A stretch of DNA of 64,000 nucleotides from Eutreptiella sp. 'Long Island Sound 2002'. Lineage: Eukaryota > Protista > Euglenida. The stretch spans positions 168,640,001 through 168,704,000 of the forward strand of contig OZ038378.1 in the NCBI GenBank assembly GCA_964036045.1, written 5' to 3'. The position numbers were made by a program, and so were the translations under genes. Each line of letters starts with the position of its first letter. Positions within the stretch are counted from its first letter, which is position 1. This document shows, piece after piece, positions 14,101 to 58,129 of the stretch. The notes beneath the pieces are model-generated. The model was not told the DNA's origin, searched no databases, and saw only the letters and a program-made list of their open reading frames with translations.

Positions 14101-14854
14101 CCATATTGACGCACACTCACCTGATGCTGTTGTCAATTTTCAACGTTCCGGGGGTTACTATACAAGGGGAAGGGGGGTAGCTCATGTTGGCCAACAGACT
14201 GAACTATAACTGATTGACCCGAATCCGATGTCATCTTTAGTTTGCTGACCCTTCATCCCACAACCCCCCCCCCCCCCTTGTCCAGAGTACCGCAGCACAG
14301 CAGGTGTATGGTCCCTGTTTGTTTGGGAACTGATTGTAGTTCGGTCCCAAATCCTGTGCCTGGTCTCAGGGTGGGGGTGGGGTTTGATGCTTGGTTTTTT
14401 TCTTGTGCATATGTCAATGCCCAAGAATTTTTGATTTTGTACACAAGTGCTGTGGAACAAGGGGCCACTCTACGGTGGGCCCGCCATCCCCACCATCAAC
14501 ACTCCACCTCTGCATAACTGTTCCTGTTCCATAGACCTCATTCCTTGCCACTGTACAACGGCCCCTGTTCCTTGCCACTGTCCTACCAGAGGCCAAGTTT
14601 CAACAACCGCTTACTACCAGAATACTGCACTTGGACAAAGCTGTTACCAAAGGGTGACAGATATACTGTTGATGACAGTAAAACGGAGAAACCCAGACAC
14701 ACGACCCTTGTGAGGCAGGTGGTCGTTCAATGCAGTGACTCCAGTCATTCGGGTGTGACGAATTTCCCCCACCGACAGTACCCCCACCCAAACTTCCCCT
14801 CCGCCCCAATTTAATGGCTTCAGTCTCCGAAGGGCCTGCCATGCGGCCAGGGGA

Positions 14855-15368
14855 ATGGTCTTCGTTCGCCAGCGTCACCAAAAGCGCCCTGCGACCGAGC
14901 GCGGGAAGCGCGGCACGAGCTGCGGCAGCGGCCCGCGACCCTTGACCGCATGCGCACAGCCGAATGCGCTCTTGGAGATGCCGGGGCCGCCCCCCGTGGG
15001 CCGCCGCAGCGCCATCGACGTCCGTGCATCGCTGCCCTACCCCATCGCGCCGTGTGTGCCGGCGACCCCCAGGCTCTGGCACGAGCCCCCGGGTAGCACA
15101 GTTGATGGCCCGGACACACCGCCGCCGAATGGGCAGGCGGCGCTGTCGTGGGAGGCAGTACGCGGCCCCACTGAAGGGCGCGATCCGCCACGGCTGCACG
15201 GGCACAGCGCTGTTGTTGTGGGAGACCGGCTGCTGTTGCTGTTCGGCACGACCCGCGTGGGACTGTATCCGCCTGCGTTCAGCGAGTCGGTGCACTGGTT
15301 TGACGTTGCGCAGCAACAGTGGGGCCTGTACAAAGCCCCACAGGGGGACCGCCCGGCACTGCGGACAG
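14855..15368 (+). CDS. Kelch-F-box-WD40 exon 1 (Pro-rich N-terminus + Kelch blade 1)
   Basis: PPRLHGHSAVVVGDRLLLLFG..VHWFDVAQQQW; donor G|GTTCTC at 15369; 5' end uncertain. Confidence 0.8.
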
Positions 15369-17187
15369 GTTCTCCACCTACACTGCCCCTGTCACGCAGG
15401 CCAAAGCATCGTCGACCCACCTGACCGCCATTTTTCCGATGGTATTCCTGCCGTCGAAAATGGCCCGTTGTAGTGGGAAAAAGAGGCCAAAACGCCAACG
15501 TGACGTCCTTGCTTGATAGGTAGATTTGCGACGAGATGGGTCTCTAATCTGCACCTCCGTCCCACACATCACGTGGCTGCAAACTGTGGTTTGCTGGTTG
15601 CTCGGGGGTTTGCATGCACCAGACCCCTCGAAGGACTGTCTCAGGGCCAGAATCACTCACAATTGGTCTGAGACAGGTGCTGATACATTCATTCCCCGTG
15701 GGATCTTTTTCTTTTGGCAGAAAACACGGTTTTGATCCATCGTTGACCCATTTGCAGTCCAAAACGGCCTATGTTGAAGGCTCTGTGGGACTCTTTAGGT
15801 CCCAAACAGGTTTCAACAGGCTCATTTGGATTTGGAGCCATGCAGCACATGATTCTGCCCAATCCTGGTTTGGCCGTTTTCTGCCATAGTGCACAGATTT
15901 TGGGCTATTTTGGGCCTTTTAGACGGTGTTTCTTGGACGACTATCATGGGATATCATGGGAATAGCTGAAAAGGCTTTTTTGACACAAGTCAAGTCAGGT
16001 CCGTCTGGCTGGTTTGAGGTGGTTTTAGGGCCAATTTTTCGTCCAATGCTGCACAGATTTGGGCACCTCCGAATTCAGTGCCCGCGTTCTAGACAGCTAG
16101 CCACCATTGTGTTTGAGGCTCAAAATTTGGATTCGGGGCTGACACCTGTCAACGCACAAGATGGCTAGAGTAGAGTACAGTCTGAAGCGGTGGAACCCCG
16201 CAATGGCTACAACGGAAATGTGGGACGAGGGTGTACTAGTATATTACTACACCCCTCTCCCCTTAAATCTAGCTAACAAGCAAGCAAGCAAGCAAGCAAC
16301 AAGCAAGCAAGCGAGCAACCCTTCTCCTTTCCGTTTTGGCTATTGCTTCGCCTCATCGCTCCGGGCTCTGCTCTACTCTAAGCATCTTGGAGCCTAGGTG
16401 GTGCCCTTGCCGAATCCAAGTTTTGAGCCAAAAACTCACCGGTGGCGCCCCGGGGCGGGGGCGCCAAGTCGGGAGGTGCTCTCCCAAAATTGCGCATTTT
16501 GTGCCCCAAAACAGCCTTTTTTGGCCCAAAACAGCCCCATAACCCATTCGAAACGACCAAACGAAGGGAAACGATTAGTACACTTCACGTGGGCCTTGAT
16601 TGCCCCATGACAAAGAGCCCTTTGTTGCCCTCCAACTCCACAATATGTCCGAGAAACGGCCCAAAAAATGGCCAAAAATGGCCAAGGTTGCGCGCAGTAT
16701 GTGTCAACAAGCCCCAAAACCAAGAACGGGCCTCTGCCGGCCATGAGACAAAGCTGGGTGCATTCCTGTTTGTTTGTTTGTTTGTTGCGGTGTTTCCGCC
16801 CCCCTGACTAGTTACACTGTGTTCAGCATAGGGGAGGGTCCAAGGGAGAGACATGGCGAATGCTATGTTTTGTGGTTTGTTTGTTGCGGTGTTTTCACGC
16901 TCTAAACGGTTGGCACTATGTTCTGCACAGGGGCTAATCCCGGAGGGGAGCAGCATGTCCCGTGGAACGGAAACCAGAAAACCCTGGGTGGCCTGCAGCT
17001 GGCTAGGGGCAATGTTCATATAGGAAGGGATGCAGTATTGTTCCTACGGATATGAAGGTGCAAATTAGTGTGCTAGGGGCTCCTGCAAGGCCCACACACG
17101 GACTACGAACTCATGGTTATTGTAGCAATGTAGGAATGTAGGCCTGTTGAACCTCGCAGTTTGAGCATGATTGGAATTGATGCCTTG

Positions 17188-17226
<39 letters not shown>

Positions 17227-23200: not shown

Positions 23201-26200
23201 ATTTTGGCACCAACCATCTCGGGCTCAAGCCCTATAGACCCAATTGCATGGGTATGGGCATCTTAGCGCCATGTGGGTGATTATGAGGGATTAAAACCAC
23301 AAAAAGTTGGGGTTTGAAGGTGCCTTGGAATCGGATTTCGAGCCATGTAGCCATTCTTGGTTTAGGGTTGTTTGCTCCTCAACTGCGCAGAATTTGGGCA
23401 ACTTTGGGCCAATCTGGGGGTGTTTCGCGGACATGTCGTGGAGTTGGAGGTCACTGAAGAGCACCTTGAAACAACGAAACCAAGGCATATGCTTTATTCG
23501 GCTGCTTTGCACCACTTACAGGGCTGTTTTGAGCGAAAAATGGCCGTGTTTGGCCCAAATTGCAATGATATGGAAGTATAGCCCAAAGCGTTGGGACGGA
23601 GATGTTGGCAAAATCGAAATGTGGAGTGTTGTTGTTGCTTGCTTGCTTGTTAGCTAGATACAAGGGGAGAGGGGTATAGTAATATATAATGTAAAAGCAT
23701 GCATGTGTAGGATGGTTTGGCACGGGTGATACTCCACTATCAAGGGCTGGCAAATGACCTCGGGGCACTATGCCATTAACCAAAATACCACCATCCATCC
23801 ACCCCCTCCCAAACTTGTGCCTTCCAGTGACATCTGTGCAAAACTCAGTGAAACAATCTTTTGTATAAATTTGGTAAAGTAGTAAAATCAATTACAACTT
23901 TTTTCAAACAATTCTGTCGATACTAAAGTTAGTGTGTTTTCATAAAAAAAAAATTCAATCAGTTTTACTGAAACTGAGGAAAAAATATTGTCCAAACAAA
24001 TTTTTCGAAAAAGTGTTTTCCAAAGTTTTACTTCATTTCTTACTCATATTCAATGCTGGGATCAAACCCCCTGCAGGCCAAGCCTCCTCTTCCTTGGCCC
24101 CGGTACTGCCCTCCCCCTGCTCTGCAGCCACAATGTCCTTTCTGTCCCCCGCCACCTCAGGCCAGTCTGCATGCCTTTGGGAAGATGGTGTGTACATATT
24201 CGGGGGCCATGCAGGGCCCATGACTCTGTTCGATGATGTGCACCGCTTCGACGTGAGGGGCGACGGCATGTGGCAGCCGCAGCACTGTGTGGGCCAGATT
24301 CCGCCGGGCATGTGGGGGCACAGCGCCAGTCTGGTGCAGGACACCATGTACATCTTTGGTGGCAACACGGTGTGTGTTCTGCTGTGTGGTTCGTGTGAGC
24401 CCCTGAGTTCCTATAGGGTCTGGGTTTCGTTCCGACCTTTTGCAATTCCGTTGCGCGTGTTGGAAATGCCATGCATGCAGCGTGATGTTTGTCCTGTTGG
24501 TTTTGACTGCGGGCTCGCTTGTTGCAGTCCCTTCGCTTTCTGGAAGTCCCAGTATGCTTGCACAAAGTGGTGGGCAGGTTATGTTAGGATGTGGTATGCA
24601 CAAATTATTGCAGTGCAGTCCAGAGCTGGGTGCTACTGTTGTGGATGTGCTCAAATGAGAGCATGAACGGGTCCACCCAACAGAGTAAGTGAATGTACCA
24701 TTTCATTTCTACATCTTGGTTCCATCCTGGCATTAGCATCGTGCCTGGTTTGGTGGGCCTATACCTGCCTGCACATTTTACGCAGGCAGATTGTGCACAG
24801 GGATGCGCCACAGGACTTTTGTAGCCATGATTGGGCCGTGGATAGTGAATGCCATGGTCAACGCAAGCCTAGTGGATGGTTATCAAGGGTTCCTTACTGC
24901 ATGATCTCATCTGCCCGTTGCACGTCATAACCCCGGCTCGCCAGGCCACACCGAAGCATGGAGCGCTTTGTGACCTGCTTTTGACCCTAGTGCTGCAACA
25001 CCAAGGTCCTGTCACCGTGATTCACCACTTGGTCCAGCGACCACGCCCTCTCTTTGGCTGCCTACCCAGAATGGCAATGGCATCCAGAGGCTCTATTGAG
25101 GTCCCTAAGGGGCCCGGTTGCTTAAGGCATCCCGTAGGGAGTGTCACTCCCCCCTCATCCTTTTCTGCACTTACTATAAATGGTCCTCACGCCACTCATG
25201 CGCACACTCCTGACATCCCTGCTCCTTACCAGAGTAGAAGGGTGTGATTCCCTACCGCGCTTTGCACATCTGGTGGGGCCCTAGTCTCTCCTTTGTGGAG
25301 AGCAGTGGTGTCGTCACTGCAACGTGCATTATCTCTGAGAGAAAGGTTGAAAAGAATTTTTTTGTTGGTTCAGTTCGATCTTTGATGGCGCAGTTTAGAA
25401 AGGTTGGAGGGAGTTGCATTGCAGAGGATAGCTCTTTTCTTGCGGTGCACCTTGCGGTGCCAGCACATGAGCTGATACTACTTGTGCTGCCCAGCCAGAC
25501 GCAACTACCCAATTGCTCAGAAGCCTCTCTGTGGAGGATTTGTAATAGGTCACCCCTCACCCTTTTTGTGTCGATAGAGTGTCCTCCCCACTGTTGCTGC
25601 CCGTGTTGCAAATTTCTTTTGTCCCCGGGAGAAGCAGGACACCTTTGGGGGGCAGTTCCCATGCTGTCTCCTTTGGCCGGTGGCGTTGTTCTTGTCTGGT
25701 GCTGCATGTAGGGCTGGGTTGGTTAGGTTGCGTGCCATATCCTGGGCATCCCTGCCTACCTGCGCTGGCAGCAGGCAGTGGGTTCGATACTGGTGCAGGT
25801 TGGGCATGTCAAGTTGTGGCTTTGGGTGCAGCTGCCGTCCTTTAGGCTCTTGCTCCTGCCCTACCCACCCACCCTGTGGAGGGAGGGTGGTGGAGGGGAG
25901 CAGCTTGGTGAAGAAACGTGTTGTGCCGGCCCTACACAGCACAGGACCTGTACCCGAGGGGACTATTTCAGGGGTAGTGCTAGAATCCACGAGTATGGGT
26001 GGCAATACCACGATGCATTGTAGAGCACCCTCTCGCCCCTGTGCCCAGCCCTACCCCGGGTGGCGGGCCCCCTAGTACCCCCTGGGGCACCAAGTGACGG
26101 TCCCTGGGGGGGATGCGCCGCGGATGTGTGCAGGGAAACCGTGGAAGCAAACTGATCAACAATTTGGCAAAAACCTGCAGAGCAATGCTGTGGGCTGGGC

Positions 26201-29200
26201 GTTTGAGGCAACATCCTTGGCTTTTGGTATTTTGGAGACTCCCATCCTGCTCTCCGCTGAACGGCATGGAAGGCTGGGTTGAGAATTGTGTTGTGGGGCG
26301 TTGTAGGGGGACTGCACGGTGGGGGATTGTGTAAGAGGAGAATGTGCACAGATTTTGCGGCGCTCGTAGTGGACACCGCCGATGGAACGATTTAATTGTT
26401 GTTGGTATCGACAGTCTGGAGGCTGCGGACCCAGCGGTAGAGGGATGGCCAGGTGGCAAAGCAGGAAGTGGGACGCTTTTGGTGTCAAGGACACCAACCG
26501 ATTTTACTGATGTGCCGTCGACTGTCCTGGAAGAAAATTTCTTGTCTGATTGAAATGGAGGATGACGTGAGTGGAGCCTCCTGACCTTATTGCCTGGAGC
26601 AGGGGACACATTGCCGCTGGCAACCAGCACCACTATTGTCATCATGATTTTTGGATCCCCATGACAATTTGCAGCGGGGGTGACATTGTGTGCCGCGGCA
26701 AGCTGTGCGGTTGTATAACACCATGGGACCAGTGTGCTGCCTTCTGATGTCGTTTGCCACATGTTCACAGGAACGCGGGGGCTCCGGCGACCTGTGGGCG
26801 CTGCACCTTCCCACGCTCACGTGGACCTGCTTTGACCGCTCCATCGTTGGGGGAGACGTGCCCCTGGGCCGCGCCGGCCACACCGCCGCGGCAGCGCCCC
26901 CCAACACAATGTACGTCGTTGGCATCCGCAACTTGCGGGAGACGGTGTATCGCTTTGACCTGGTGACCAGACGGTGGCGTCGCTTGGCCGCAGCTCCGGC
27001 CCAGGTCGGCACGGGTCTGCGCGCCACGGGATGCGGAGTGTTACGTGCAGGGCCGGACCATCCCCCACCCCAGGGATGCATTAGAAGGGAAGGGACCTCG
27101 TAGGCGGCCCCAGAGGCGGTTAGGCAGGCGGTTGGAGGAGGTTACCAAAGCGGTTGCGGGCCCTTCCAATGCATCCCTGCCCCACCCCCACGCCCTCCTC
27201 CTCCAGGTGGGCCAATGAGGGCACACCCACCACACATCCAACAGCCACGCGGTTGTGGCAAAGGCCCGTGGGGCAATCGAGCGGATGAAGGTGTGGCGGA
27301 TGGTGAATGGTAAACGGGATTGTGTACTCGGCATTTCTCCCCCATGACCCTCCCTAACGCCTCAAGGCCCACGCAGTGCGGGCGGTGCAGGGCCCGGGGG
27401 GACTTCAGTTCCAGACCCCAATGGGCAGCGGGGCCGCACGTGGGCGGTGGGGGGGGGGGGGGCGGGGGAGTGGGTCAGAAATGTTTTGGGTTTGGGGGGC
27501 ACACGTGAATCCCCCGTTTCATTCTGCACTTTGGGCCCACATACGTCGGGGGCGTGAGGGAGAGGAATATTGGGGCACGAGGGGGGGCAGGTCGCGTACG
27601 ATATTGTAATTCTGCCTCATACCGCTGCCCCACACCCACCCGCCCGCTCCTGAACGCGCCCTGTCCCTCCTGAGCGCCCGAACGCCATTTTACAGCCCCA
27701 AGTCCTACCGACTGCCGTCGGTCACTCTTTTTTGCCGCGCCCCAACGGGCCACCCAAAAGCCTGTTCCCGTGGGTATCCCACGGCGCTTCATTTTGCTTC
27801 AGAAGAGGAAGGACGAAGGCAAGCCATCGCAGCCACAGCGGCTGTTGTTGGACCCCTGCACTGAAACCCTGTGGACCGTTGGCCCCGCAGGGCTGCACGC
27901 CCTTCCCCATGGATCGAAGCGGTTCGCGCGCGTCCCGGCCGCCAATTCGCAATTTTTACGGAAGCTGCATGGGCACTGCACGGTCTTGTACAACGGCGTG
28001 ATCTACATTGTGGTGTGTGCCATGCCCGGCGTATTTTCTCTGCCAGCGTAATTTCCAGAGTCATTGGTGGGGGGCATCTTCTGTGCTTTCGTAAAACCTC
28101 CTGAAAACGGCTGTCAAAAAATTGGTTCTGAGCCAATGGGAGAGTGCCAACACTGTTTTGTTCATGGTGTGACCACCCAGAACGGTCTGAACATCCGTGT
28201 AGAGGATTTGGGTGACCAGTGTGACCTTGGGTAGGCAAAACTTATGTCTGTAAGCATGCACGTAGTGCACAGTCATCATGGATTAGTGGCTATATCGTTC
28301 GCCTCACACGCGAGAGGTCGCTGGTTCGACCCCAGCTGATGATAGCTTTTTGCACACCCAAACGAAGAGGCAAGAATTATGTCTGTACGCACGCACACAG
28401 CCCTCAGAGTCATCATGGATTAGTGGCTATATCGTTCGCCTCACACGCGAAAGGTCGCTGGTTCGACCCCAGCTGATGATAAATTTTTGCTCCGCCGAAC
28501 TGTGAAATGCTGAACAAGGTTGTTGCATGGATTGCACTATTAAGAGGTACATGTCACCTTCAGGTCACCCACCCTTCATACCATCGATCCATTGCTCTGC
28601 CATGCCAGAGGTGGCGCAAATGTCCATCGTAGCTTCTTCACCGCAGCTGTGCTACGCTCATGACTGGCCACCACACACTGAGGAGCTGCAGTTACAAAAT
28701 CTCTTTGAGTCTGCCCCTTGTCGTCATCCCCTGCCCCTTCCCACCCTTCCTCTACTTGCACTCCTACCGGAAGTTTCGAATATTACGCTCTGGACCGCCC
28801 CCCTAGCCAAGCGAATAGTGACCAACTGTACCTTAATGTCATCCCCCTCCCTCTCTGGTGCTGTATGAATTGCAACCTGATTCATCTCGGCCTTCAGTCT
28901 TCGCACCGCTGTCTCTTTCAGCCTACAGTCTTTGTGCCTCGTGCACACTGGGAAGCCTACGGGCATGGCAGTCTAACCTGGTTTCAGACTCAGCCAATCC
29001 TTACTACGTGTCAGATCCAATACCACGCCATTGTGGGGAGCATACACCCGAAAGCGTCCGACGCGCGCCCGTCACGCACTCGACACGAACCCGACGCGCA
29101 CCCGACGCGCACCGGATACACGTACGCCACACGCATCCGACAGCTTTCGACGCGCAAACGACACGCACACAATACGCCCTTGACACTTGGTTGATTGAAG

Positions 29201-47200: not shown

Positions 47201-50200
47201 AGCGGATTTTTTATAAATTATACAGGAAGAGTTATTGTGATTCATATGTATCATATTATCCGCCTACATTTTCTTGTAGACTGGGATTTTTTGCAAGTTC
47301 ATATCTTCATCTTCATTGGCTTCGCTGTCGTGCTTGTATATCATGGACCCCAAGGGCAAGGCCACAGCACCGACCCCTCCATACCGACGGGACGCTAAGA
47401 AGGGATACCTGCCCTCAGATGACCTTCCCCATGCCGGCCCTGAGCCCTCCGGCTACGCTCCGAGGAGTTTTCTTAAGGGGAATAGCTTAGACCACCACCG
47501 CGTTAGTTTCGCTTTCTCCGCTGGTGGGCCCTTCTGAAAGGACTTCACCGGTTCCTGGTCACAGAGCCAGACAATAGGGTTACATCCCAATAGTCGGGAC
47601 TGGGATGAGAGCACCGGTGTTGTTTTGACATGTCGCAATATGAGCAATGAGACGCTGCGCCATTTGGCAATGATGTATGGCAATAAAATGGACAAGAAAC
47701 GCAAAACTGAGGAGGAGCAGTAGAAACACGCCCAGTTATGAGTTGATTCAGCAGTGTTGACATTTACAGGGGGTTAGGGCATGTGATTCACTGTGTTTTG
47801 GTCTAGTTTTTGAAACCTGTGCCGCTTTCGGAAAATGATGGTACCCTTAACCAACAGCTTGAAGCATGCCACAGCATGCTGCAGCATGCCGCAGCATGCT
47901 GCAGCGAGCCAAAATTTTCTTGGGGACCGTTGGTGCTTGGTCACGACCTTCATTGCCCTGAGTTTCAATTGGGACATTGTCCCGCAGTGACCTGCGGTGA
48001 TCGAATCGGTGTGATCACAGTCGCCTTTTCTTGACCCAGGGTCAGATTTTTTTCCGACCCGGAGGATCCCCCCCCCCTCCTCACCGTCTCCATATCCCCG
48101 TCAAACAACAATGTAGTGGGCAGCGGTTGCGCGAATTTTTTTTGGCGTTTTTATCTTTCCTTGTCCTCTTTGCTGACTCACAGATGCGGCGCCAGGTATT
48201 TCTTTTCTGTTGCTTTGGCGTCAGGTGTTGATACGAACGAAATGGTGGAACATCATAAATGTGATGCGTCATGTGGGCGGGTGTTTCTCTCTTGCTCTTG
48301 CTCGTGCCCTTTCACATCAGATTCATTGGATGTTGTTCCTGTTCACAGGCCAGGGCATCATGGCACGTTGACGCAGGTCAGGCTTGACACGAGAGCGGTT
48401 GTGTCCGCTGCTTATGACAACTGTGTTAAGATTTGGCCCATCGATGCCGATTTGCCTTTGGCCACCCTCACGGATCACCAGGTGTTGCCTGTGCTTCGTT
48501 TCTATGTGGGAGGCTTGGGTCGTGCCAGGCTGTGCACCGCGGGAAGAATGACCACCCGCCGTGGGTCCAAGTCATTTGGGGGAGGGGGGGGGCTCACACA
48601 CACGGAACCACAGAGAGGCAGGTTGTGGATGGCCTGAGGATGGAGGTGTGTGGACAGCAAACACAGTCAAACGACCCCCACAACAACCAGCACAACCCCA
48701 GTACGCCAACTGCTGGGCGCCGCTGACGCTTAAACGGCACATACTGCCACATCCAGCACAGCCTCAGCAGCCGTAGCAACTGAAATGGAGCAGCATGAAC
48801 AGCAAATGCATGCCCGCCAGGCTTGTGCCCAGTAACCCAGGGGTTGGGGGGTTGAGAGACTTTGGAACTTTTCTCTAACGCTTTCACTTTACCCACCGGA
48901 TTTGGGTCAGTGGATGCCTCTACTTAGCCCTCAGTAATTCAGGTTTACCCCGTGTCTGATCGCAATGCAGCCCCCAGACAAAGTTCAGCGACCCTCTCCA
49001 GATTTTCTGTCATGCCTTCCTCATGCACCAACCCATTCTCAAACCCAATGACCCGCCATAAGCTCCGGCGTATGTGGGGCAGACAGTGGGAATTCCCGGG
49101 GGGCGCTGCATGGCCTCTTTGAGGCACACATCTCGCCACACCGACTGACCGGCGAAGGGGCTTCTCATGACCGCACATAAGAAGCCGTGCCAGACCTGTT
49201 TATCAAACAAAGACTTGCCAATGAAACCGAGTTTTTCGTCAATCACATGTCATTTTATCGTTGGAAAGAGCAGTGACTGTGGACAATCGAGGGGAGACAA
49301 GTGTACTACACTCGGAGTCTGAACACCGCCGATGGTTTTTTGGGTTACAGCCCTGTACAGTGCCAAAGGCTGTACCGTTGGCACCTGTTGACACAGCTGG
49401 CCAACATCATGACACAGCGGGTGGAGGGTGAGGAAAACCCACCAATGAGGCTAAGGGCTGACGTGCGTTATGCGTGTGCTGCATCGCAGCGATGACTTCA
49501 CCCACGGGTAGATCCGTTTTGGCACAGCATCTGACGTTTACATTGTCACTCGCTCGCTCGCTCGCTCGCTCGCTTAAATGATGGGCATTTGTTTGGGGGA
49601 GGTCCCACAGTGCCTCTCGCATGTCCTACCGCGTTCTTAGGACACGCCCCACCATCTCTTGTACGAGGCCGATTGCGATTGGCTGTGCACTGCATCGGAC
49701 AGCACCATTCTGCTGCACGATTTGCGAACTCTGGAGCTGCTGCGGTCGTATTCTGCGCAGACCACTCGCCGCATCTCCTGCGTGCACCGGGACGGCAATC
49801 TGATGGCGTATGGCAACAACGGCGGGTGTGTTCTGGACCGGGGACCCGCGTGCCCGGCATGACCCATCCAGAGGACCCCGCTCCCTGGGCCAACCGCTTT
49901 ACAGACCGACAGCTCAGCCGCCCTTGTTCGGCCGTGCACCACGACTTCGATGCCGGATTGGCATTGCGTACCGCACATTGGTCATCAGTGGCCACTCATG
50001 ACTCAGAAATCACGACACAAAAGAGCGCGCGCATAAAAACTGTCGTTTAATTATCAATCGCGCTCAGAGGACGACTAAAGGCCGTCGGTTGCGTTGAGAT
50101 GAACTTTGATCGAGACTGACCGCCAAAACCGCCAGGCGATCGACCGTCCACTGCTCATCGGGGGACCTGGACTTCCTGTACGGAGAACGCGCAAACAGGC

Positions 50201-53200
50201 GCTTGTCCCTCAAGAAACGCCCCGGGCCTCATAGTGATCCACAGCGTCCCTGATCCGCACCGAACCGCCGTAGCATCCGAGCAACGCGCACGCGAGGCCG
50301 TGTGACGGTAAAAGGCGACACTTGCTACTGTAATCAGCGTGTGTCTGAGGCGACCAAACCTGTACGTCTGCTTTGTCTGCCTTCGCAAAACGCGCTCTGT
50401 GGCATAGGCTTCACGTCTGCGATCTGCGGATGGACGCGGAGGTGGGGCACATCAACGTGTATCAAGGCGCAATGCTGACCCTCCGCATTGCAGACGCCAT
50501 GAAGATCTACACCGGAGGGGGTGATGATGACCCGCGACTGGTCTGTGCCGTGCCTACCCCGTTGCCAGAGCTTCCCCCCCTGATCTCCCTCCCTTTCTCT
50601 TGTCATGCCATCCTGCTGAGCAATGCCGCTTTGACGTTCGACCAGAATTTGTTTGCGCGGTGTGCTCACGGTGCGATGCGCAGTGCGCGTGCAGTACTGT
50701 GGAGGTGGCGCTTGGCATGCAAACACTCGAACCAATGAGGACAACCCACGGCTGCTGTTGCCGGCCCAGTTGCTGGACCCATCTTGGGGAGGTCGGTGCA
50801 ACATGCTTTCCTTTTGGGGCTCTCTCTGACTCTCTGCCTTGCCTTGGTTCGCCACACAACACATGGAAGAAAAGCAGACGCAGTGTAGTGCTCAGGGTGC
50901 GCTGGCATCCTCATGGGAAACAAAATTCATGGTGTGTGCTCTTTACAAGGATTTGGAACTCATACAGAAGGGCATCTGGGGTGCGAGGCAGTCTGGCGTG
51001 AGAAAGCGCGCTGCAGCGTAGAGGATGGGCATTGTAATGTGAGGAATGACTATTGGGGCGTTTTAATGGGAGGGAGAAACGTTTTGGCGTGAGATAACGG
51101 CATTGGGGTTTTCAGGAAGGGCCTCGCAGTGTGAGTGTAGGGCACTGGGGTGTGAGGGAAGGATATTAGCGTGTGAAGGAGGAGCATTGGGGGGTGAGGG
51201 AGGAGCGTTGGAGGCTAAGAGAGGAGCATCAGGGTGTAAGGTAGGAGCATTGGGGTGGGAGGGAGCATTGGGTGTGAATGAGGAGCATTGGAGTCAGGGT
51301 GTGAGGGAGTAGCTTTGGGGTGTGAGGGAAGAGCATCAATGTGAGGGAACAGCATTAAGGAGTGGGGGAGGAGCATTGGGATTCAGTTGGGGACGAGCGT
51401 TGGGGTGTGGTGAAGGATCACTGGGGTATGATGGGGGAGCATTGGGGTGTGGAGGGGGGGGCATTGGGGTGTGGAAGGGGGGGCATTGGGGTGTAAGGGG
51501 GAGGCATTGGGGTGTGAGGGGGGGGAATTGGGGTGTGAGGGGGAGCATTGGGGTGTGAGGGGGGGGGGGCATTAGGGTTTGAGGGGGGGGGCATTGGGAT
51601 TTGATTTGATTTGATTTGAGGGCCGATCTTGAGGCTCACAGGCAGCCTGGGGGCGCTCGATGGCTGTCCCGACGACTCTGCATATCGGTGGGCCATGCAT
51701 GCAGTGCACTCCCCGTCCGTGTCCGCGGGCCGGGGGGGGGGGGGGGACGCCTATTGCCGCGCCTTGGGATGCTTGAGGAGGGGAGGGGGGAGGGCGGTGC
51801 GCGCACTTGGCCGGGGGGGGGGGGGGGCTCCCGGGTAGGGGGGCAAGGGGGGGGAGGGAGGGGCGTCGGGGCTCCGGCGGAAGCTCACCCGGGGGCCTTG
51901 GGTCAGGGCACGTGAAAGACGACTTGCACCCTGCAACGTTGTCGCCATGCCCGCATGAGCTCGCGGGCGGCGAACCACGCACGCGCGGTGGCGTCCTCTC
52001 CCGCCCGGGGGTACTGGTGCTGCGGGGGCAGCGGGGGCACCCCCGGGGCAGGCAATACCACATACCACTCGGCATATACCGTGGGGATCGAGGCCTGCAC
52101 CGCGCCGGCTACCGCATACTGGTTGGGGGGCATGGCGAGGGACCGGTTGCCCCGGGAGAGGCACACGAAGGTGCCGTCGTGGGCCCCCGGACCCCTCCGC
52201 CACATCGTCCCGGCCCTCGACCACGAGCCGGGCGCTGCAGGGCGCTGGTCCAAGCTTGCGGGGTGGGGGCCCCGCCGCGGCGGATGGGGGACCCAGGTCC
52301 CAGAGGGGGGCCAGCAGAGGGGCCACCTTGTCAGGCCGCGTGCCCTCGCTCCGATGGAGGCGGGGGGACCGCCAAAGCGGGGCTCCCGCGCCGTACCTCC
52401 AGCCGAGGGCCTCATGGAGCGCGGGCCCGGACACTGCTAGGCGCTGGGGGACCCGCTGTAGCGCCGACAGCACCCACCGGCGGTCCGCCCCCGTAGCCGT
52501 CCAGTGGAGGAAGCACCCCATGAGGATGTCCTCCAAGCAGAGGTGGCTGGGGAGCAGCCCCCCGAGGATGTGCAGCGCATAGACAACGCTCGCTAGGGAC
52601 TGCTCGGAGCGTAGGAGGCGGGTGGGCAGCGCTTGGCTCACATGGCTGAGCCACAGGCGGAGGGTGGGCGCCGGATTGCACCGCGTCATCCAGCGGCGCG
52701 TCTGCTGTTCCCACGCGTGCAGGCGGCTGTGGGGTAGCGGGCCACGCCGGCCCCGCCTGAATGGGGACGGTGGCGGGAGGGCGCGGTAGGGGGGATATTG
52801 CACTTCACGCCGTGGCATTGAAGGAGCTGTACCTATGGTGCGGGGGGGCATTGGGGTGTGAGGGGAAGGGGCATTGGGGTATGACAAGGGAGCATTGGGG
52901 TGTGATGGGGGGGCATTGGGGTGTGAGGGGGAGCACTGGGGTGTGAGGGGGGAGCATTGGGGTGTGGGGGGGAGCATTTTGGTGTGATGGGGGAGCATTG
53001 GGGTGTGAGGGGGAGCACTGGGGTGTGAGGGGGGAGTATTGGGTTGTGAGGGGGGAGCATTGGGGTGTGACAGGGGGGTATTGGGGTGTGAGGAGGGAGC
53101 ATTGGCGTGTGAGGGGCGGAGCATTGGGGTCGGTTGGTCAGTCTGCCGGTCACTTATGCCACCCCCCCCCCCCCCTCACACCACAATGCTCCTCCACATC

Positions 53201-56200
53201 CCAATGCTCCTCTTTTCCACCCCCTACCCTCACACCCCAATGCTCCTCCCCCACACCAATGCTCCTGCCGCACACCACAATGCTCCTGCACCACAATGCC
53301 CTTTCCTCACACACTCATGCTGCTCCGTTTCCACCCAATGCCCTTCCCTAACAGCCAACCCCAGTGCTACTCCCTCACACCGTAAGGATTCATCTGGGAT
53401 CTCATGATGAGTTATGATGGAGGAATTGACTGGGACTCTTTTTGGGTTGTCATCAGGACTCGTGTCGATATATGGGATCCTAATGGAGAGACACATGTGG
53501 AGTTCCTGGCGCATCGTGTGGGGAAGTGGAGGGGAATCATGGGGATTTGGTGGAGAATGTTGTGGTTGTTTTATGGCGAGTCACATGGGATTCTTATGGC
53601 AAATTGTGTGGAGATTCTTATCAAAAATTGTGTGGGGCATCATTGGGAAATTGGGGAGTCCATAGATGAGTTGAATGTGGAGTGATGCGGCTGTTTTATT
53701 GATGCAACATGGGGATGCAGGTGGAGATTTTATCGGGAATCTTGTGGGGCTTCTATGGGAAATGATGTGTGTTCTTTGGGGAATCCTGATGGATTTTGCA
53801 GGGGGCATCATGTGGGGATTTTATGAGGAGTGGGAGTTAAGTGGGATTTTCTTGGTTATCATGTCGCAGGTTTTTTGTGGAAGTTGTGTGGGGTTTGTAT
53901 GGGGACTCGTGATTTTACGGGGATTTTACTGGGGATCTAATACAGAAGTGCGTGGCGTTGTGGAATAAGCATTGGGATTTGAGGGGGTTTACATTTTCCA
54001 TCAAACAAGTCCGATTGCTGAGCATCAATAGCTTTCTGATCGTTCGCCGGTCATGTCCGTAGAAACGGCCAACCTGGCAACCCAACGCGTCAGACCGATG
54101 AGCAAGACGAACCCTCCCCAAGGTGCTGCATGCCAACCCTTCCACAGGTGCTGCATGACCTGCGACGGCTCACTCCAGTCGCCCGCCGGAACACAAAGTG
54201 TGAGTCTCCGCATGTTTCGGGGATCTTTCGCATAATTCAAGCCAAGGGCTCGGCTACAGACCATTTGATCACGGCGGCCCATGACAACACCGTAAAATTG
54301 TGGCAATATCCGCAGGTCTCATTCTACCCCACCCATATCCGCCCCCCCGTACCTCTACGACTGAGGCGGATTTTCATTTCCAGCGCCGTTGGCTGGCATT
54401 CTCGGCTTACATCTTATCTTCATTTAATGCACTCTCCACTGCAATGCCTGTTTTCTCCTTCTTTCTTGTCATCTTGTTGCCCTCTGTAAAGAGGAACAGA
54501 GGCATCATGTGGCTGTTCCCATCCCTTAACACTACCCAACACACCATGCACTGAGCGCTCTCCATGTGCACAAGGGGTTGCATGCCCAAACAAATCATAC
54601 TGTGTTTTCGGGGAAGGTTTGCAACCTGTTTTTGGTCCGAGGCTCGGGTCCACCAAGTGATTCTTTCACCACTCCTAGTCCTTGTAGGTGGGTTGGGATA
54701 GAGTGCACCCACTGTTTGCACTTGCATTGCTTCATCTTGGAAAGCTACCATTCCCCAGGCGAGCTAAGACCCTATTTATTTGAGGGCACCCAATACATCC
54801 CACACTGTGTCTATTCTTATTCTCGCGTACCGTGCACAGCAATGCAACAACAAAAAGGGGGGGGGGCGCATCACAACACATGGCACTACAGAGTACAGGG
54901 CTGAATCAAGGATCATAGCTTTACACAAACACTGAGGCAATACACTGAGCCCAACCCAAGCTCGGTAACCATTTGGCAAACTGTGCCAAGCTAGCAACCG
55001 CCCAATAGCGGAACACTTGACTGCTAGTAACCTTGGCCTCCATGACCAGTAGGAAGGTTTCATGTTTTGGGACAAGCTGATTGTGTCCAGCTTTCTCCTT
55101 GGGGCCCTACACACTCTAGTAGTAAAGTAGCAAATTAGCAAAGTACATGGTTTTTGTGGCCTAGCCTTTTATTGCTTGGTGGTGCTAACCAATGCTTGGC
55201 TAACCCTGGTGGTAGGGGCACGATGCAATGCCTTTTCGACATGAGTTTGTCATTATTTCATATATCATGAGAGAAAGACCCAAAATATCAACCAAAGTCT
55301 CCACACAGGCCCACTCCGCACTTCTCAACCCCTCAACATGTCGGGTGGATGGACGCTTTGGGATTTCGCATACAGCGTAGATATCCGGGTGATCAAAGCA
55401 ACCACATGTACTCTTTCATGGCCAATCCCATGCTGAGCTAAGGGATGTCAACAGTGTGTTGACCCTTCCACATTGTGATGTGGCGGGGGGATTGGATAGA
55501 CATGGACAGACGGCACATTGCGCATGCGGAGTGCACACAATGCTTTTCTAGCAACAATTTTACGTGGTGCTAGTTTATCAACGTCTCAATAAATCCAAAC
55601 ATCGCAAACACGGGTATTTCTTGTTTTTGATGCGCACGCAACACAACCACATAGTGCCGTGAGACACACCCACACACACTTACACACTTACACACCGACA
55701 CACAATCATAGCACTGATAAGGGCTCACACATAGTCATACATGTTGTGTGATTCAAGGGCTATGGGGAAAGGAGTCGCATTGGCGCTCTGCTACTTATGA
55801 CCGAGGGGATGGTGTCCCTCCTCGTTGTCCCTCCTCCGTAACCACAGCAGAAGAGTGGGATTCCGTACCACGCTTTGCACGTTGAGCCGGGGCCATAGTC
55901 CCCATTTTGTAGAGAGCAATGGTGTCAACAGATCAACATGCACGGAAGTTTTTTGTTCCGGTGTATATTTCCTGGACAGTGTACACTAATGCTAATTACC
56001 CTGACTCTATGGTGCGTAGTACGCGCTCCCTGTGTCTCTTTGGATCCTTGCCTTTGCACAGTCCTCATCCATTCTCTTTATTTTATGTTGGGCTGGGACG
56101 ACATTGGGACGGTCTTTGCTTCATTCGATCTGCACGGCACGGCTGTTGTGGATTGCCATGTCTGTGGAGCGACCCTAGGGCGCAACAATTGCCAGTCTAG

Positions 56201-58129
56201 TCATCACCATCTCCTTGGTGACTGACGTGTGCCGCAAATCCCCTCGGCATGAAATATTTTGTACGTTGACAATACCTGAGAACTTTTTTGAGTGGTGGTT
56301 GAAAATCGCAAGGTGCAATTCTAAGCAAAGGCCCGAAAGTCGCATGGCCGAGAAAAAAATTAGGCTTTTGGTTTGGCACCCTACTTGGAACTCTGCCGCT
56401 TGGAAAAAGTGCTTGTAAATTTTGATGGGCGGGGCTGCTTGGGAAATGTGCTTGCGAGATTGCATGCGAGGTTGCTGGGTGGGCTGGGCTAGGATTGGTG
56501 CTTGAAAAAGCTGCTTGGAAAAGGGGCCAGGTGGGGAGCTTGGGAAAAGTGCTTCGAAATTTTTGATGGGTGGGGGTGCTTGGGAAATGTGCTTGCAAGG
56601 TTGCATGCGAGGTTGCCGGGCGCGCTAGGCTGGGATTGGTGCTTGGAAAAGGGGCTGGGGGGGGGTCTTGGAAAAGGTGCTTGGAAATTTTGATGGGTGG
56701 GGGTGCTTGGGAAATGTGCTTGCGAGGTTGCAGGAGAGGTTGCTGGGCGGGCTGGTCACCACAAGTGGTGCTTGGGGGCCCTTGTTTTGGTGTGATGCTC
56801 AGCCCTGCCATCTGTTTTTGTCCGTCCCTCCAACGGCCCTCCGGTTGATGCACGGAAAAAGTGCTTGGAAATTCTGCTTCCTTTGTTTCAATACCAAACC
56901 AGTTGTTATGTCTCATTAGAAGTTTGTTCGGGTTATTCCTACCAAGAAGTGCTCGGGAAAGTAGTTCCAACAATACCACGACACACCATCACGTGGAAGT
57001 GATTTTGGTCTCCATGGGCTACTAAAAGAAAAACTCGGTTGTGAATACGAGAGAAGAGATGTAGCAATACCCCTGACCAAAGGGACATTTTATGGGAACC
57101 ATATTTGTGGCATGTGATGGGAAACACAAGGGGTCTATAAACGTGGTGCCAACAGGCATTTTGGAAATGGCAAGGAAATGCATGGTCCCCTTGGGATGCA
57201 GATACACAAAAGTGTGTGGCTGTGGTCAAGATGGACATTCAAAGCAACAACAAACCTCGTACAGTGCCTTGCCCTGCCACCACCAAGCAACACATAAACG
57301 GGGGTTAGCCAGGCTTTGCCTCTCCCTTTCTCCGCCATTTCTCCGATCCATATTCTTCTTTACTGAGTCTGAAGCGATTGCTATCTGCCTGAACCTCAAT
57401 CCCAAGGGAGAGTCTTATGAGGTGGCCCTGAAGGCCGTCAAGTCAAGTCATTGCAGCCGTACGCTTTGTTCCCCTTGACCCCCCCCCCCCCCCCCCTCCC
57501 CCGCAGCCTGCAATCCCATCTTCCTCCAAGAGGCTGCGCATCTTTGGCACCCACTGAAGTGCACCATCTGCTCTGCCAATCTGAAGCCCAAGACAACTAT
57601 GGCAGCCAACAGAAAATCTCTTTGGTGTATTTTTCCAGGGCCCCACACAGTCAGACATTGCTCCTCAGCAGCTGGGGTGCTTAAACTTAATGATTCACCC
57701 CCCCCCCCCCCCCCCACACACACCCTTTTCAACGCTTTGTATTCGCCAGAAACTGCCTCCCAACCGCTCACTCAACCGCCGGTAAGCGCGTTTGCAACCA
57801 CCTCCTTTTGCCCCTGGTCATGGGACCGATTGATATCTTACGTGGGGCTTCAATCCGTTGTTTAATGGGACTCAGGCCTCGGGTCGCATTGATGTCGCAT
57901 CAGCCTTCAGCAAATGATTTCTCACGCTGGCGTTACCTGTACCGTCGCTCAGGCACATCACACGATCCGGTTCGAGGGTCGATCCGTTCCGCTGCGAGAC
58001 ATCAAGTGGGACGGCTTCAGCCTCGTGGCCCTCGCCGGCTCTGTCCTGCACATTCATGACTTCGCCCCCTCCAAGTCCACAGCCGCCGCGGGCAAGCGCA
58101 AGCAGCGGCCCCACTGGTTCGTCGTCTAA
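14855..58129 (+). CDS. Kelch(6)-F-box-WD40 protein, 12 exons: join(14855..15368,24161..24369,26771..27004,27803..28012,31256..31331,35072..35424,36675..37033,48349..48481,49641..49825,50408..50540,54148..54315,57953..58129), about 916 aa
   Basis: All 11 introns are GT..AG with matching phases and the total of 2751 nt is divisible by 3. Motifs read through the junctions (PALRT|GQSACLWEDGVYIFGG, IYIV|GGAIDD, VLVTSQ|GPDNSLCLF, QRW|PGHHG, DPRL|VLHD). The start codon and the 31331/35072 join are the least certain parts. Confidence 0.8.
16241..19256. mobile_element. Foldback-type element with about 490-bp inverted arms
   Basis: Arm 16241-16732 is the reverse complement of 18774-19256; the ORF track shows near-identical peptides on opposite strands. 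Termini read atattactacacccctct. Confidence 0.75.
17240..17858. mobile_element. Long-TIR MITE nested inside the foldback element
   Basis: About 230-bp inverted repeats (17240-17470 versus 17625-17858) around a short spacer, with TA-rich termini. Confidence 0.75.
19260..23700. repeat. Cluster of tandem and inverted fragments of the same repeat family
   Basis: Recurring tttttgacccatttttggtcccaaaacggcccattttcaa and gcacctcccgacttggcgccc blocks, as in 15900-19250. Confidence 0.75.
24161..24369 (+). CDS. Exon 2 (Kelch blades 2-3)
   Basis: GQSACLWEDGVYIFGG..VHRFD..W..GMWGHSASLVQDTMYIFGGNT; acceptor cctcAG; donor GTGTGT. Confidence 0.9.
26771..27004 (+). CDS. Exon 3 (Kelch blades 3-4)
   Basis: DLWALHLPTLTW..GRAGHTAAAAPPNTMYVVG..VYRFDLVTRRW. 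Confidence 0.9.
27071..27179. mobile_element. hAT-type MITE, internally deleted copy
   Basis: TIR CAGGGATGCATT..AATGCATCCCTG with an 8-bp TSD ccccaccc (27063-27070 and 27180-27187). Confidence 0.8.
27803..28012 (+). CDS. Exon 4 (Kelch blades 5-6)
   Basis: Acceptor ttgcttcAG; ..LHGHCTVLYNGVIYIV; donor GTGTGT. Confidence 0.85.
28272..28344 (+). tRNA. tRNA-Val(CAC), copy 1
   Basis: 73-nt cloverleaf: acceptor stem GTCATCA/TGATGAT, anticodon arm TTCGC-CT-CAC-AC-GCGAG, T arm GCTGG-TTCGACC-CCAGC, discriminator A, downstream TTTTT terminator. Confidence 0.92.
28409..28481 (+). tRNA. tRNA-Val(CAC), copy 2
   Basis: Identical to copy 1 except A at position 43, giving a perfect anticodon stem; followed by a TTTTT terminator. 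Confidence 0.93.
30160..30455. repeat. Dispersed repeat family copy (partial copy at about 48645-48775)
   Basis: Shared gtggacagcaaacacagtcaaacgacccc..caacaaccagcaca..tacgccaa..gggc.ccgctgacgc. Confidence 0.75.
31256..31331 (+). CDS. Exon 5 (end of Kelch blade 6)
   Basis: GGAIDDVRMSSCIYQLVLPEPEAAA completes the YIVGG motif; acceptor tacAG; donor GTGTGG. Confidence 0.75.
35072..35424 (+). CDS. Exon 6 (F-box and linker)
   Basis: LLRDVVLQYCGAADLCRVGQLSHSLRALAGQCVLWEGAY..WQKLYGARALVERHWARG, a Fbw7/beta-TrCP-like F-box plus linker; phase-1 acceptor gtccAG at 35071. Confidence 0.8.
35470..35790 (-). pseudogene. Possible decayed non-LTR reverse transcriptase N-terminal fragment
   Basis: KNGPDNSLLHVFK..LHK..FGPLNTNGRYKHV loosely resembles the LINE RT motifs KAPGPDG..K and YRPISLLN.DYK. 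Confidence 0.3.
36173..36290. repeat. (GGGCAGT)n / (ACTGCAC)n minisatellite
   Basis: Direct tandem heptamers with reverse-complement units nearby. Confidence 0.8.
36675..37033 (+). CDS. Exon 7 (WD40)
   Basis: GPDNSLCLFN..LTCLDVDEGSGLLATGCKDRTVMLWSCLTGELLQR; donor GTATGC at 37034. Confidence 0.85.
37662..37685 (+). other. Euglenid spliced-leader (SL) exon relic
   Basis: TCTGAGTGTCTATTTTTTTTTTCG matches the euglenid SL (ACTTTCTGAGTGTCTATTTTTTTTCG as recalled for Euglena gracilis), lacking the first few nt and with a longer T run. Confidence 0.85.
37662..37928 (+). pseudogene. Processed retrocopy of an SL-capped mRNA 5' end (SL + 30-nt UTR + about 71 codons)
   Basis: SL joined directly to ggtcagcctttcaatttttcccttgtcaaa-ATG(37716), followed by MSKNDMVQLADGTQIPL...QFREVMALAET with strongly biased codons. 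The frame stays open to TGA at 38037-38039, but the tail does not look coding. Confidence 0.75.
38301..38328. repeat. (GT)n microsatellite; also at 37638-37661, and (CA)n at 17191-17222
   Basis: Directly visible. Confidence 0.95.
39100..42600 (+). mobile_element. Ty3/gypsy chromovirus-type pol (RT-RNaseH-integrase-chromodomain), slightly decayed
   Basis: RT (LRLVVDY, MPFGVANAP, HIDDV), RNase H (ITDASD, YSTYDHELLA), integrase (H..GH, LYVDFI, HSDED, ERQNRVVE), GPY motif and chromodomain (YYVVAGIARH..KFLTLWDGYGLSEATW). One frame with in-frame stops at 39325, 42259 and 42526, ending at TAA 42598-42600. Confidence 0.93.
39394..42261 (+). CDS. Open pol segment, 955 aa (RT-RH-IN)
   Basis: Longest ORF in the window; motifs as above. 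Confidence 0.88.
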   Translation: MNLDPRLKNLLLTYDEVFGALPPPLSCKKLVQMDLKLKPEFEKTRVRRRPYPAPQEQVEEIERQIQECIDAGLVEEYKKGDYPHHCSPCFLVAKPGSTALRLVVDYGEVNKKTQNHSGSIPNMENTLERIAKCRYKTKMDKRSGFWQVDLTAAAQELLAFITPKGRVFKWKVMPFGVANAPALFQELMNKILSILRRRPLVQELISRGAEMEAHIDDVSLGTNTQEDHVLLLREFFIVCQENHLRIKLEKCEFMKEEMEYLGFDVGYGWWKPAASKMQPPQDMQIRDDPKKGLHDVRSFVGACNFYRRHIHNFTYSSAPLTDLIKKTTPWRWTAREEECFQELKKKIASSNCLGVPRPKGEIVLITDASDVGGGGTIYQWQKLNPAELTHCHYRTTRLNRDGSLKHDYPSSEWRLVPLGHWNWKWNQARSNYSTYDHELLASMLVLSSQSLLLGSNPIVWLCDQEPVKSFQKGPPAEKAKLKRWWTYLSQFRLTVHHIPGIKNELSDYISRNNFDALIGESSEALAKEAFQRMDVQLDLSMRTAGIPEGWSLTDYRSEYKEIIQILSTGLEPRVIDGHQWYKNNQYLFYEDRIVVPEARLDGCLQWSHLSSGHSGANRSVHFFRECFYSGLTLIELRSRMQTIVDACGYHASKHSDSRDRGLISSLPIPYCTNSLLYVDFIHRLPRFGGYDSCLVVTCGLSRFTRVFPCNKKITGEQTVKMLVEQWFEPYRAPKQVHSDEDVRIRSDTGWYKRVLNALNVEVTTGVPYTHTSNPRCERQNRVVEQNLRILMKQERTKDSVRLVPWAVLTMNSQRSSSTGFTPHELFHGGRPAWFFKTPFPEDFKSPVCDWLEHKQSMPNQAGTNLRHIREREVSRRNRLRRPASFKVGDLILVHHSRLPSWPRNCLQDPYFGPYRIIRIDGSRIHVRCSPRLGGELLCAPKQLRHYHSPDDLSWD
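43479..43900. mobile_element. PIF/Harbinger-type (Tourist-like) MITE
   Basis: TIRs GGTTCGGAACC and GGTTCCAAACC, TTA on both flanks, and many subterminal aaccggtt / aatcgg motifs. Confidence 0.7.
45590..45658 (+). other. Degenerate tRNA-like (SINE-head-like) sequence
   Basis: A-box-like taccctagtgg and B-box gggttcaaacccc at tRNA spacing, but no intact cloverleaf. Confidence 0.4.
46224..46490 (-). CDS. Short AT-rich hypothetical ORF (88 aa)
   Basis: Open frame with plausible amino-acid composition inside an AT-rich island; no family recognised. Confidence 0.3.
   Translation of the reverse strand: MNSFEIQCITEGLQIDKAGLSKKIQSQLDETNDFYVKTGMTLASKLASSTSCALFWMKWSWLGIWDIRVKPDTEYDLAKQLNSETVKK
47491..47614 (-). 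mobile_element. Inverted fragment of the same gypsy RNase H region
   Basis: Near-identical reverse complement of about 40725-40848 (VLSSQS.LLG.NPIVWLCDQEPVKSFQKGPPAEKAKL.RWW). Confidence 0.9.
48349..48481 (+). CDS. Exon 8 (WD40)
   Basis: PGHHGTLTQVRLDTRAVVSAAYDNCVKIWP; phase 2 matches exon 7. Confidence 0.88.
49641..49825 (+). CDS. Exon 9 (WD40)
   Basis: DWLCTASDSTILLHDLRT..RISCVHRDGNLMAYGNNG. Confidence 0.85.
50408..50540 (+). CDS. Exon 10 (WD40)
   Basis: LHVCDLRM..KIYTGGGDDDPRL; acceptor catAG; donor GTCTGT. Confidence 0.82.
51130..53380. repeat. About 20-bp minisatellite (GGGGGAGCATTGGGGTGTGA)n, interrupted by a LINE, with an inverted block at 53170-53380
   Basis: Tandem units at 51130-51598 and 52842-53130; reverse-complement units ccccaatgctcc follow. 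Confidence 0.85.
51599..52841 (-). mobile_element. 5'-truncated non-LTR retrotransposon with RNase H-like C-terminus and (AAATC)n tail
   Basis: GC-rich frameshifted coding remnants (HDGT..YAEWY..GEDAT..VQVVFHVP, an RNase H D-E-D layout); (GATTT)n at 51599-51618; gggggggcattggg on both flanks. Confidence 0.6.
54148..54315 (+). CDS. Exon 11 (WD40)
   Basis: VLHDLRR..DHLITAAHDNTVKLWQYPQ. Confidence 0.85.
56418..56750. repeat. Tandem repeat, about 130-140-bp unit, roughly 2.5 copies
   Basis: tttgatggg..ggtgcttgggaaatgtgcttgc.aggttgca occurs three times. Confidence 0.85.
57953..58129 (+). CDS. Exon 12 (last WD40 blade and C-terminus)
   Basis: LRDIKWDGFSLVALAGSVLHIHDF..KRKQRPHWFVV*. Confidence 0.85.
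   Translation, partial: AHHTIRFEGRSVPLRDIKWDGFSLVALAGSVLHIHDFAPSKSTAAAGKRKQRPHWFVV

Follow-up and report, generated by a model that had tools for sequence, protein, structure and literature searches.

F-box receptors are thought to bear one substrate-binding module, placed after the F-box. FBXW7/yeast Cdc4 and beta-TrCP share with the gene model described here the order of F-box, helical linker (W..LY....VER.W..G) and WD40 propeller of seven to eight blades, and FBXO42 and the plant FBK proteins resemble it in uniting an F-box and a Kelch propeller in a single SCF receptor. The combination of F-box and Kelch is frequent in plants, and the known F-box proteins carry either Kelch or WD40 after the F-box (PMC4327156); in the literature we found no description of an F-box protein with both. 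Neither F-box nor Kelch proteins are mentioned in the Euglena proteome and genome papers. Here we analyze a window of 64 kb (the whole stretch of Eutreptiella DNA under study) in which Kelch, F-box and WD40 exons follow one another on the plus strand. They probably belong to one gene and encode one polypeptide, a reading that depends on a predicted splice between exons 5 and 6 (from 31331 to 35072).

The locus was treated as a nuclear gene with spliceosomal introns and spliced-leader trans-splicing, and its exon model was built from donors, acceptors and phases alone. Family scans, homology searches and docking were run exon by exon, the joined model being used for length, phase, stops and GC3, and the own-genome searches cover the 2.28-Gb assembly. 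Rebuilt independently, the model comprises 12 exons on the plus strand between 14855 and 58129 (Table 1), which join into 2586 nt, or 861 codons with one terminal stop. All 11 introns are GT-AG, the phases agree at every junction and the frame ends at a TAA (58127-58129). The twelve phase-compatible exons proposed in the sequence-only reading of this DNA are thereby borne out, whereas the join obtained here has 861 aa and not 916. In order, the encoded parts are an N-terminal tail of ~95 aa, the Kelch repeats, a Pro/Ala linker, the F-box, an FBXW-type linker and the WD40 repeats. A repeat motif is restored across the splice at 10 of the 11 junctions, for example ..VIYIV/GGAIDD.. and ..HVLVTSQ/GPDNSLCLF.. 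(slashes mark the splice); the sole junction without a restored Kelch or WD40 motif is that between exons 5 and 6, which sits in the Pro/Ala linker. The Kelch half and the F-box-WD half are alike in GC3 (0.783 and 0.786, respectively), and the introns have a GC content of 0.49-0.64. Three exon starts are ambiguous, those of exons 4 and 12 (alternatives in Table 1) and that of exon 7, where the acceptor scores 9.6 at 36675 versus 1.3 at 36981 and the leave-one-out codon score is 34. Exon 12 was placed by phase, an acceptor score of 7.8 and a codon score of 11. A Pfam scan of exons 10 and 12 returned no family, and the N-terminal 95 aa gave no family match.

Table 1. Exons of the model, with positions counted from the first letter of the window.
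Feature	Position	Strand	Content
Exon 1	14855..15368	+	From the first ATG of the open frame; Pro/Arg-rich tail of ~95 aa, closing strand ALSWEAV, Kelch blade 1
Exon 2	24161..24369	+	Kelch blade 2 and start of blade 3
Exon 3	26771..27004	+	Remainder of Kelch blade 3, blade 4; strong acceptor
Exon 4	27965..28012	+	First strands of Kelch blade 5 (LHGHCTVLYNGVIYIV); alternative acceptor 27920
Exon 5	31256..31331	+	Remainder of Kelch blade 5, start of Pro/Ala linker (..LVLPEPEAAA); blade HMM E 2.7e-05
Exon 6	35072..35424	+	Pro/Ala linker, F-box, FBXW-type helical linker (WQKLY..VERHWARG), first strands of WD40 blade 1
Exon 7	36675..37030	+	End of WD40 blade 1, Pro/Ala-rich insert of ~55 aa, WD40 blade 2
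Exon 8	48349..48481	+	WD40 blade 3 (GHHGTLTQV..AAYDNCVKIW); strong acceptor
Exon 9	49641..49825	+	WD40 blade 4, start of blade 5; WD40 E 5.7e-4; leave-one-out codon score 18
Exon 10	50408..50540	+	Remainder of blade 5, start of blade 6 (degenerate); position from phase and splice sites, with a codon score of 10
Exon 11	54148..54315	+	Remainder of blade 6, blade 7 (ITAAHDNTVKLW); best acceptor of the gene
Exon 12	57953..58129	+	Degenerate blade 8, basic C-terminal tail, stop TAA; alternative acceptor 57911

The N-terminal half is, judging by its repeats, a real Kelch propeller, most like those of LZTR1, the KLHDC proteins and FBXO42. Pfam Kelch families were found at 14855-15421, 23878-24663 and 26684-27100, several single-repeat models exceeding their curated cut-offs. 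In exon 1 the family PF24681 matches residues 98-172 (E 1e-05); this exon has a leave-one-out codon score of 38 and a CAG/gt donor, and its splice to exon 2 restores 'ALRTGQSACLWEDGVYIFGG'. Exon 2 matches PF24681 with an E of 1.7e-13 and exceeds the cut-offs of Kelch_4 (28.9 bits, cut-off 21.6), Kelch_6 (27.5, 25.3) and Kelch_1 (24.7, 20.1); exon 3 does so for Kelch_4 (28.0 bits, cut-off 21.6) and Kelch_3 (25.0, 22), with an E of 1.1e-09 for PF24681. Among PDB sequences, exon 2 matches the Kelch domain of LZTR1 (E 1.6e-21), KLHDC3 (7e-09), KLHDC10 (7e-07) and FBXO42 (1.3e-08), and exon 3 matches the Kelch domains of BSU1 and LZTR1. LZTR1 and KLHDC2/3/10, Kelch receptors of CRL3/CRL2, are the best solved relatives of these exons, and PF24681 is their best Pfam model. 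Exon 4, whose acceptor is weak, was recognized by the blade HMM (E 1.4e-05) and gives 'VIYIVGGAIDD' when joined with exon 5. The Kelch exons of the sequence-only reading were thus recovered in stop-free pieces of the plus strand, with tandem motifs in the family profiles, as expected of Kelch proteins, but not its six blades: five are recognizable, and the blade HMM finds no further one anywhere in the 64-kb window. Instead of a ring of six or seven blades, there are these five and an N-terminal strand, ALSWEAV, able to close the ring; a degenerate sixth blade may lie in residues 60-95.

Kelch blade 4, encoded by the second half of exon 3, has one copy elsewhere in the genome, on the minus strand at C1:79621208-79621378, with 68% protein identity. 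This copy lies inside an open frame of 215 aa, 89 Mb away on the same chromosome, and no other exon of the gene was found within 90 kb of it; because of this isolation, it gives no second look at the architecture.

In agreement with the sequence-only reading, an F-box followed by the linker WQKLY..VERHWARG was found on the plus strand at 35072-35424, with a Pfam F-box score below the cut-off. On 35056-35466 the F-box-like profile gives 16.6 bits (E 0.0066, cut-off 24.3) and the F-box profile 13.2 bits (family profiles PF00646/PF12937, motif of ~45 aa). Compared with PDB sequences, exon 6 shows only a marginal F-box-like match (E 0.31) and reaches no FBXW chain; its atlas neighbors are F-box and F-box/WD clusters at 0.83-0.86, which serve as a lead only. 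Among 1.8 billion representative proteins, residues 21-126 of exon 6 align with an E of 1.5e-4 to the F-box and linker of P0003, an unnamed F-box-WD40 protein of 578 aa from a JGI metagenome. It is the sole true relative of exon 6 in that set, with 30% identity over F-box, linker and first WD strands, the other matches being the window's own ORF (P0001) and a junk repeat protein (P0002). The Pfam F-box of P0003 (residues 204-245), its linker and its first WD repeat are colinear with exon 6, the F-box aligning to the motif TPALLRDVVLQYCGAADLCRVGQLSHSLRALAGQCVLW. The N-terminal 200 aa of P0003 are of low complexity and hold no Kelch, in contrast to the Kelch N-terminus of our model. Among the matches listed by a word search around the F-box of P0003, its relatives are plain FBXW/WD40 proteins, including one from Balamuthia mandrillaris, and the Pfam families listed for them include no Kelch.

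For Skp1, the partner expected of an F-box, this genome has at least three matches well above the Pfam cut-off (L002, L003 and L004; C9, C18 and C23), and full-length copies devoid of introns are encoded in it. The copy at L002 is a full-length ORF of 187 aa without introns. The 2.37-Gb assembly of E. gracilis holds 32,806 genes that have 8 exons on average (PMC11252322); an intronless Skp1 is unusual at such a mean and is possibly a retrocopy. Modelled docking of exon 6 on this Skp1 (L002:1492-2052:-) scored 0.64, the best of three controls scoring 0.02. The mark so passed is attained by 51 out of 78 solved complexes and by 2 out of 108 mismatched pairs. The docking runs share at least 69% of their contacts, with a partner pLDDT of at least 68, and the predicted interface sets exon 6 residues 13-38 (the F-box helices) against Skp1 residues 125-184. 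As in FBXW7 and beta-TrCP, it is the C-terminal helices of Skp1 that the modelled docking engages. The model predicts the Skp1 binding by which F-box membership is tested. Since Skp1-F-box complexes have already been solved, the predictor may have reached this score by reproducing them, and the docking speaks for likeness to a working F-box rather than for binding.

Exon 6 encodes F-box, linker and first WD strands without a break, and exon 7, with its very strong acceptor, completes blade 1. In exons 7, 8, 9 and 11 the best-scoring family is WD40, with 21.2, 16.5, 20.8 and 14.2 bits for the pieces at 36.9, 48.4, 49.7 and 54.3 kb, respectively. The E-value for WD40 is 4.3e-4 in exon 7, 0.013 in exon 8 and 0.071 in exon 11; exons 8 and 11 also match the TEP1 propeller (E 0.0023 and 0.0056), and exon 8 gives a tblastn match to the WD repeats of P0003. 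An HMM built from the WD40 repeats of P0003 was too poor for use. Taken singly, the exons display the F-box, helical linker and C-terminal WD40 that define FBXW proteins. An earlier estimate of about seven to eight WD40 blades holds in part: eight units, two of them degenerate, are present by motif, and WD40 is found in four separate exons, but only four units reach the Pfam WD40 family at E < 0.1. Since the F-box, the FBXW linker and the first WD strands share exon 6, and controlled modelling docks this exon on a Skp1 from the same genome, the prediction that the F-box-WD40 half is an SCF-type substrate receptor is well supported.

Whether this half continues the Kelch half depends on the junction of exons 5 and 6. 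No ATG lies in frame in exon 6, and a TAG at 35053-35055, 17 nt before the acceptor, closes the frame of this exon; the F-box must therefore join an upstream coding exon. The donor of exon 5 (CTG/gtgtgg, at 31332) has a leave-one-out score of 5.4, among the best of the gene and of a quality encountered about once per 1.5 kb, and it falls within the 39 nt that precede an in-frame stop at 31370-31372. Exon 5 and exon 6 agree in phase (phase 1 to phase 1), although this agreement is weak evidence because the two candidate acceptors of exon 6, at 35056 and 35072, differ in phase. The 3740 nt between the two exons are a typical intron length in this gene. The best codon log-odds in this gap (8.3) lies within intron noise, large real exons scoring 21-43, and a scan for an ATG plus a donor found no credible alternative first exon in it (best codon score 3.5). 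The likeness of codon usage (GC3) between the halves was also counted in favor of fusion.

The same junction can be read as the boundary of two same-strand genes, a Kelch-only gene of exons 1-5 followed by an ordinary FBXW gene, an arrangement that we consider rather unlikely. The Kelch gene would then close with the stop at 31370-31372 or with a last exon that escaped notice. The FBXW gene would begin with a short coding exon overlooked somewhere in 31.4-35.05 kb, which would supply the ATG, take the spliced leader and be joined to the acceptor at 35072 or 35056. Several observations suit it. With donor 31332 unused, the Kelch ORF stops 13 codons further on as a complete Kelch-only protein, whose propeller is already closed by the N-terminal strand, so that the fold needs nothing more; the acceptor of exon 6 is weak; and a first exon of less than ~30 codons could escape the codon scan. 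The F-box exon has P0003 as its sole relative, a plain F-box-WD40 protein whose N-terminus is not Kelch, and the relatives of P0003 are in turn plain FBXW proteins. The same-strand genes of the window lie 3-5 kb apart (the SET-MYND gene ends at 5979, a coding piece at 9887, and exon 1 starts at 14855), and in so dense a cluster an intergenic gap of 3.7 kb is not odd. On the other side, two genes would leave exon 6 without a start codon and the gap without any ATG-initiated piece that combines coding signal with a good donor, would make the exon 5 donor a chance site of its once-per-1.5-kb quality, and would have to accommodate the same codon usage in both halves. It is on these points, indirect as they are, that we prefer one gene.

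The Euglena genome has been remarked to be sparse (PMC6366073). The argument that in a sparse genome genes 3.7 kb apart are unlikely was rejected, given the spacing of the window's own same-strand genes.

Searches for an independent view of the junction were negative. Among the 1.8 billion representatives there is no transcript-derived protein or orthologue containing exon 6, the word search returning only the window's own ORF P0001; of 600 pattern matches to exon 6 in metagenome contigs, none was confirmed; and the own-genome searches revealed no paralogue of the gene, exons 6 and 7 being single copy. Of the words sampled from 31050-37049, a share of 0.10 was present in one RNA-type run and of 0.08 in another, from a different study, and the exon share of the words in this 6-kb stretch is 0.109-0.116 in the model, or 0.065 with the short exon 7; DNA runs from three other studies contained 0.58-0.75 of the stretch. 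These word shares hint that the locus is expressed and are silent on the join of exons 5 and 6.

They also bear on the view that the locus is not a working gene as modelled, being instead a decaying or unexpressed gene, a mis-parsed model or an assembly join. Euglena also has non-conventional introns that lack GT-AG. This view could draw on the absence of a family match for WD exons 10 and 12 as well as for the N-terminal 95 aa, on the single copy with no detectable orthologue, and on the 68%-identical exon 3 fragment, as a sign that pieces of the gene have been copied about. We regard it as very improbable: RNA-type runs hold roughly the exon fraction of words, the DNA runs of three other studies hold a large part of the stretch, and the 12 exons keep one 861-codon open frame with a GC3 of 0.78 and motif-restoring junctions.

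The surroundings of the gene contain other coding sequences and mobile elements. On the same strand, a SET-and-MYND (SMYD-like) gene extends over 1620-5979 and ends less than 9 kb upstream of Kelch exon 1; one of its exons matches zf-MYND (E 4e-10) and another SET (E 8e-06), and its stop codon occupies 5977-5979. A piece of 207 codons at 9264-9887 (plus strand; coding score 38), which ends in a stop and matches no Pfam family, may be the terminal exon of a further gene on this strand, located between the SMYD-like and Kelch genes. Just upstream of exon 1 (14000-14210) and in intron 5 (32060-32300) lie two copies of a dispersed repeat (..FANLLRR.D...LLC.CWLDQ..). Intron 1 holds at 16000-23700 many repeat copies in both orientations (..PIFDPFL(T/V)(H/P)FWSQNGPF... 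/ ..FDPPLAPTLRGPG...), members of a dispersed element family that fills most of this 8.8-kb intron.

Two elements lie in intron 7. At 37662-38039 a genomic spliced-leader sequence (CTGAGTGTCTATTTTTTTTTTCG) is followed by a short 5' UTR and an ORF (MSKNDMVQLADGTQIPLCRPNSVNDKDW...) with no Pfam family, an arrangement that looks like an SL-capped retrocopy. The 21-mer CTGAGTGTCTATTTTTTTTCG is one that we take to be the Euglena spliced leader. This 21-mer occurs in two Euglena papers (PMC5654406, PMC6242988). At 39328-42525 (plus strand) an uninterrupted pol-type ORF of 977 aa encodes reverse transcriptase, RNase H and integrase, and a chromodomain-like piece comes after it; this is a Ty3/gypsy retrotransposon of the chromovirus type; a direct-repeat search of 37.9-48.3 kb found no LTR pair of at least 80 nt around it. 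In intron 10, G-rich satellite arrays with a 21-nt unit (GTGAGGGGGGAGCATTGGGGT) at 51129-51605, 52838-53130 and 53227-53295 lie on either side of a GC-rich core; the copy at 53.2 kb is inverted, and the GC skew rises to +0.27 in this region. The core contains long ORFs on both strands that belong to no family, such as one of 457 aa at 51751-53124 on the minus strand.

Taken as one gene, the locus would comprise twelve GT-AG exons over 43 kb of nuclear DNA and encode a protein of ~860 aa. This protein would begin with a disordered N-terminal tail and a five-bladed Kelch propeller closed by an N-terminal strand, continue through a flexible Pro/Ala linker of ~25 aa into the F-box and a helical linker of the FBXW7/beta-TrCP type, and end in a WD40 propeller of ~8 blades. 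As a whole it would recognize substrates for an SCF (Skp1-Cul1-F-box) ubiquitin ligase. The F-box would dock on Skp1 of the Skp1-Cul1 assembly, and the helical linker would hold the WD40 propeller rigidly, aiming the main substrate at the E2. Loosely tethered across the F-box, at the position occupied by the D domain in Fbw7 and beta-TrCP, the Kelch propeller would offer a second, independent binding surface for a second degron or co-substrate, a co-factor or adaptor, or a localisation partner. What is said here about substrates we infer. We tentatively propose, with less confidence than the single gene itself, a lineage-specific SCF receptor in which the F-box stands between a flexibly tethered Kelch and a rigidly linked WD40 propeller, reading two signals at once; these could be a degron and a second mark or co-factor, or the receptor could bridge two proteins. 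An SCF receptor had been suggested from the sequence-only reading, and what sustains that suggestion is the F-box-WD40 half, with F-box, linker and first WD strands in one exon and modelled Skp1 docking, and the real Kelch propeller.

The architecture itself had been called unusual, and this agrees with the protein matches listed and with the literature, neither of which amounts to an architecture search; among the matches listed for exon 6 or for the neighbors of P0003, no protein has Kelch before and WD40 after the F-box. If the receptor is as proposed, it would be a natural example of a cullin-RING ligase that selects substrates by two inputs, a topical matter for degron logic and engineered degraders, and would add to the lineage-specific domain shuffling in the ubiquitin system of Euglenozoa. 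If instead the halves are separate, an ordinary Kelch gene stands beside an ordinary, very divergent FBXW gene.

The fusion, if real, is a variant of the F-box receptors that carries a second, different propeller, and its differences from the described systems can be stated for each part. LZTR1 and the KLHDC proteins are six-bladed and reach their cullin through BTB-BACK or a BC/Cul2 box, whereas five Kelch blades are recognizable here and the connection would be made by an F-box. In FBXO42 and the plant FBK proteins, Kelch follows the F-box and is the sole substrate domain; in our model it precedes the F-box, and WD40 takes the usual place. The sequence similarity to FBXW7/Cdc4 and beta-TrCP is very low, and the present model has an insert of ~55 aa, rich in Pro/Ala, between WD blades 1 and 2. 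In place of the short dimerisation (D) domain that precedes the F-box in those proteins, the model has a Kelch propeller on a Pro/Ala tether.
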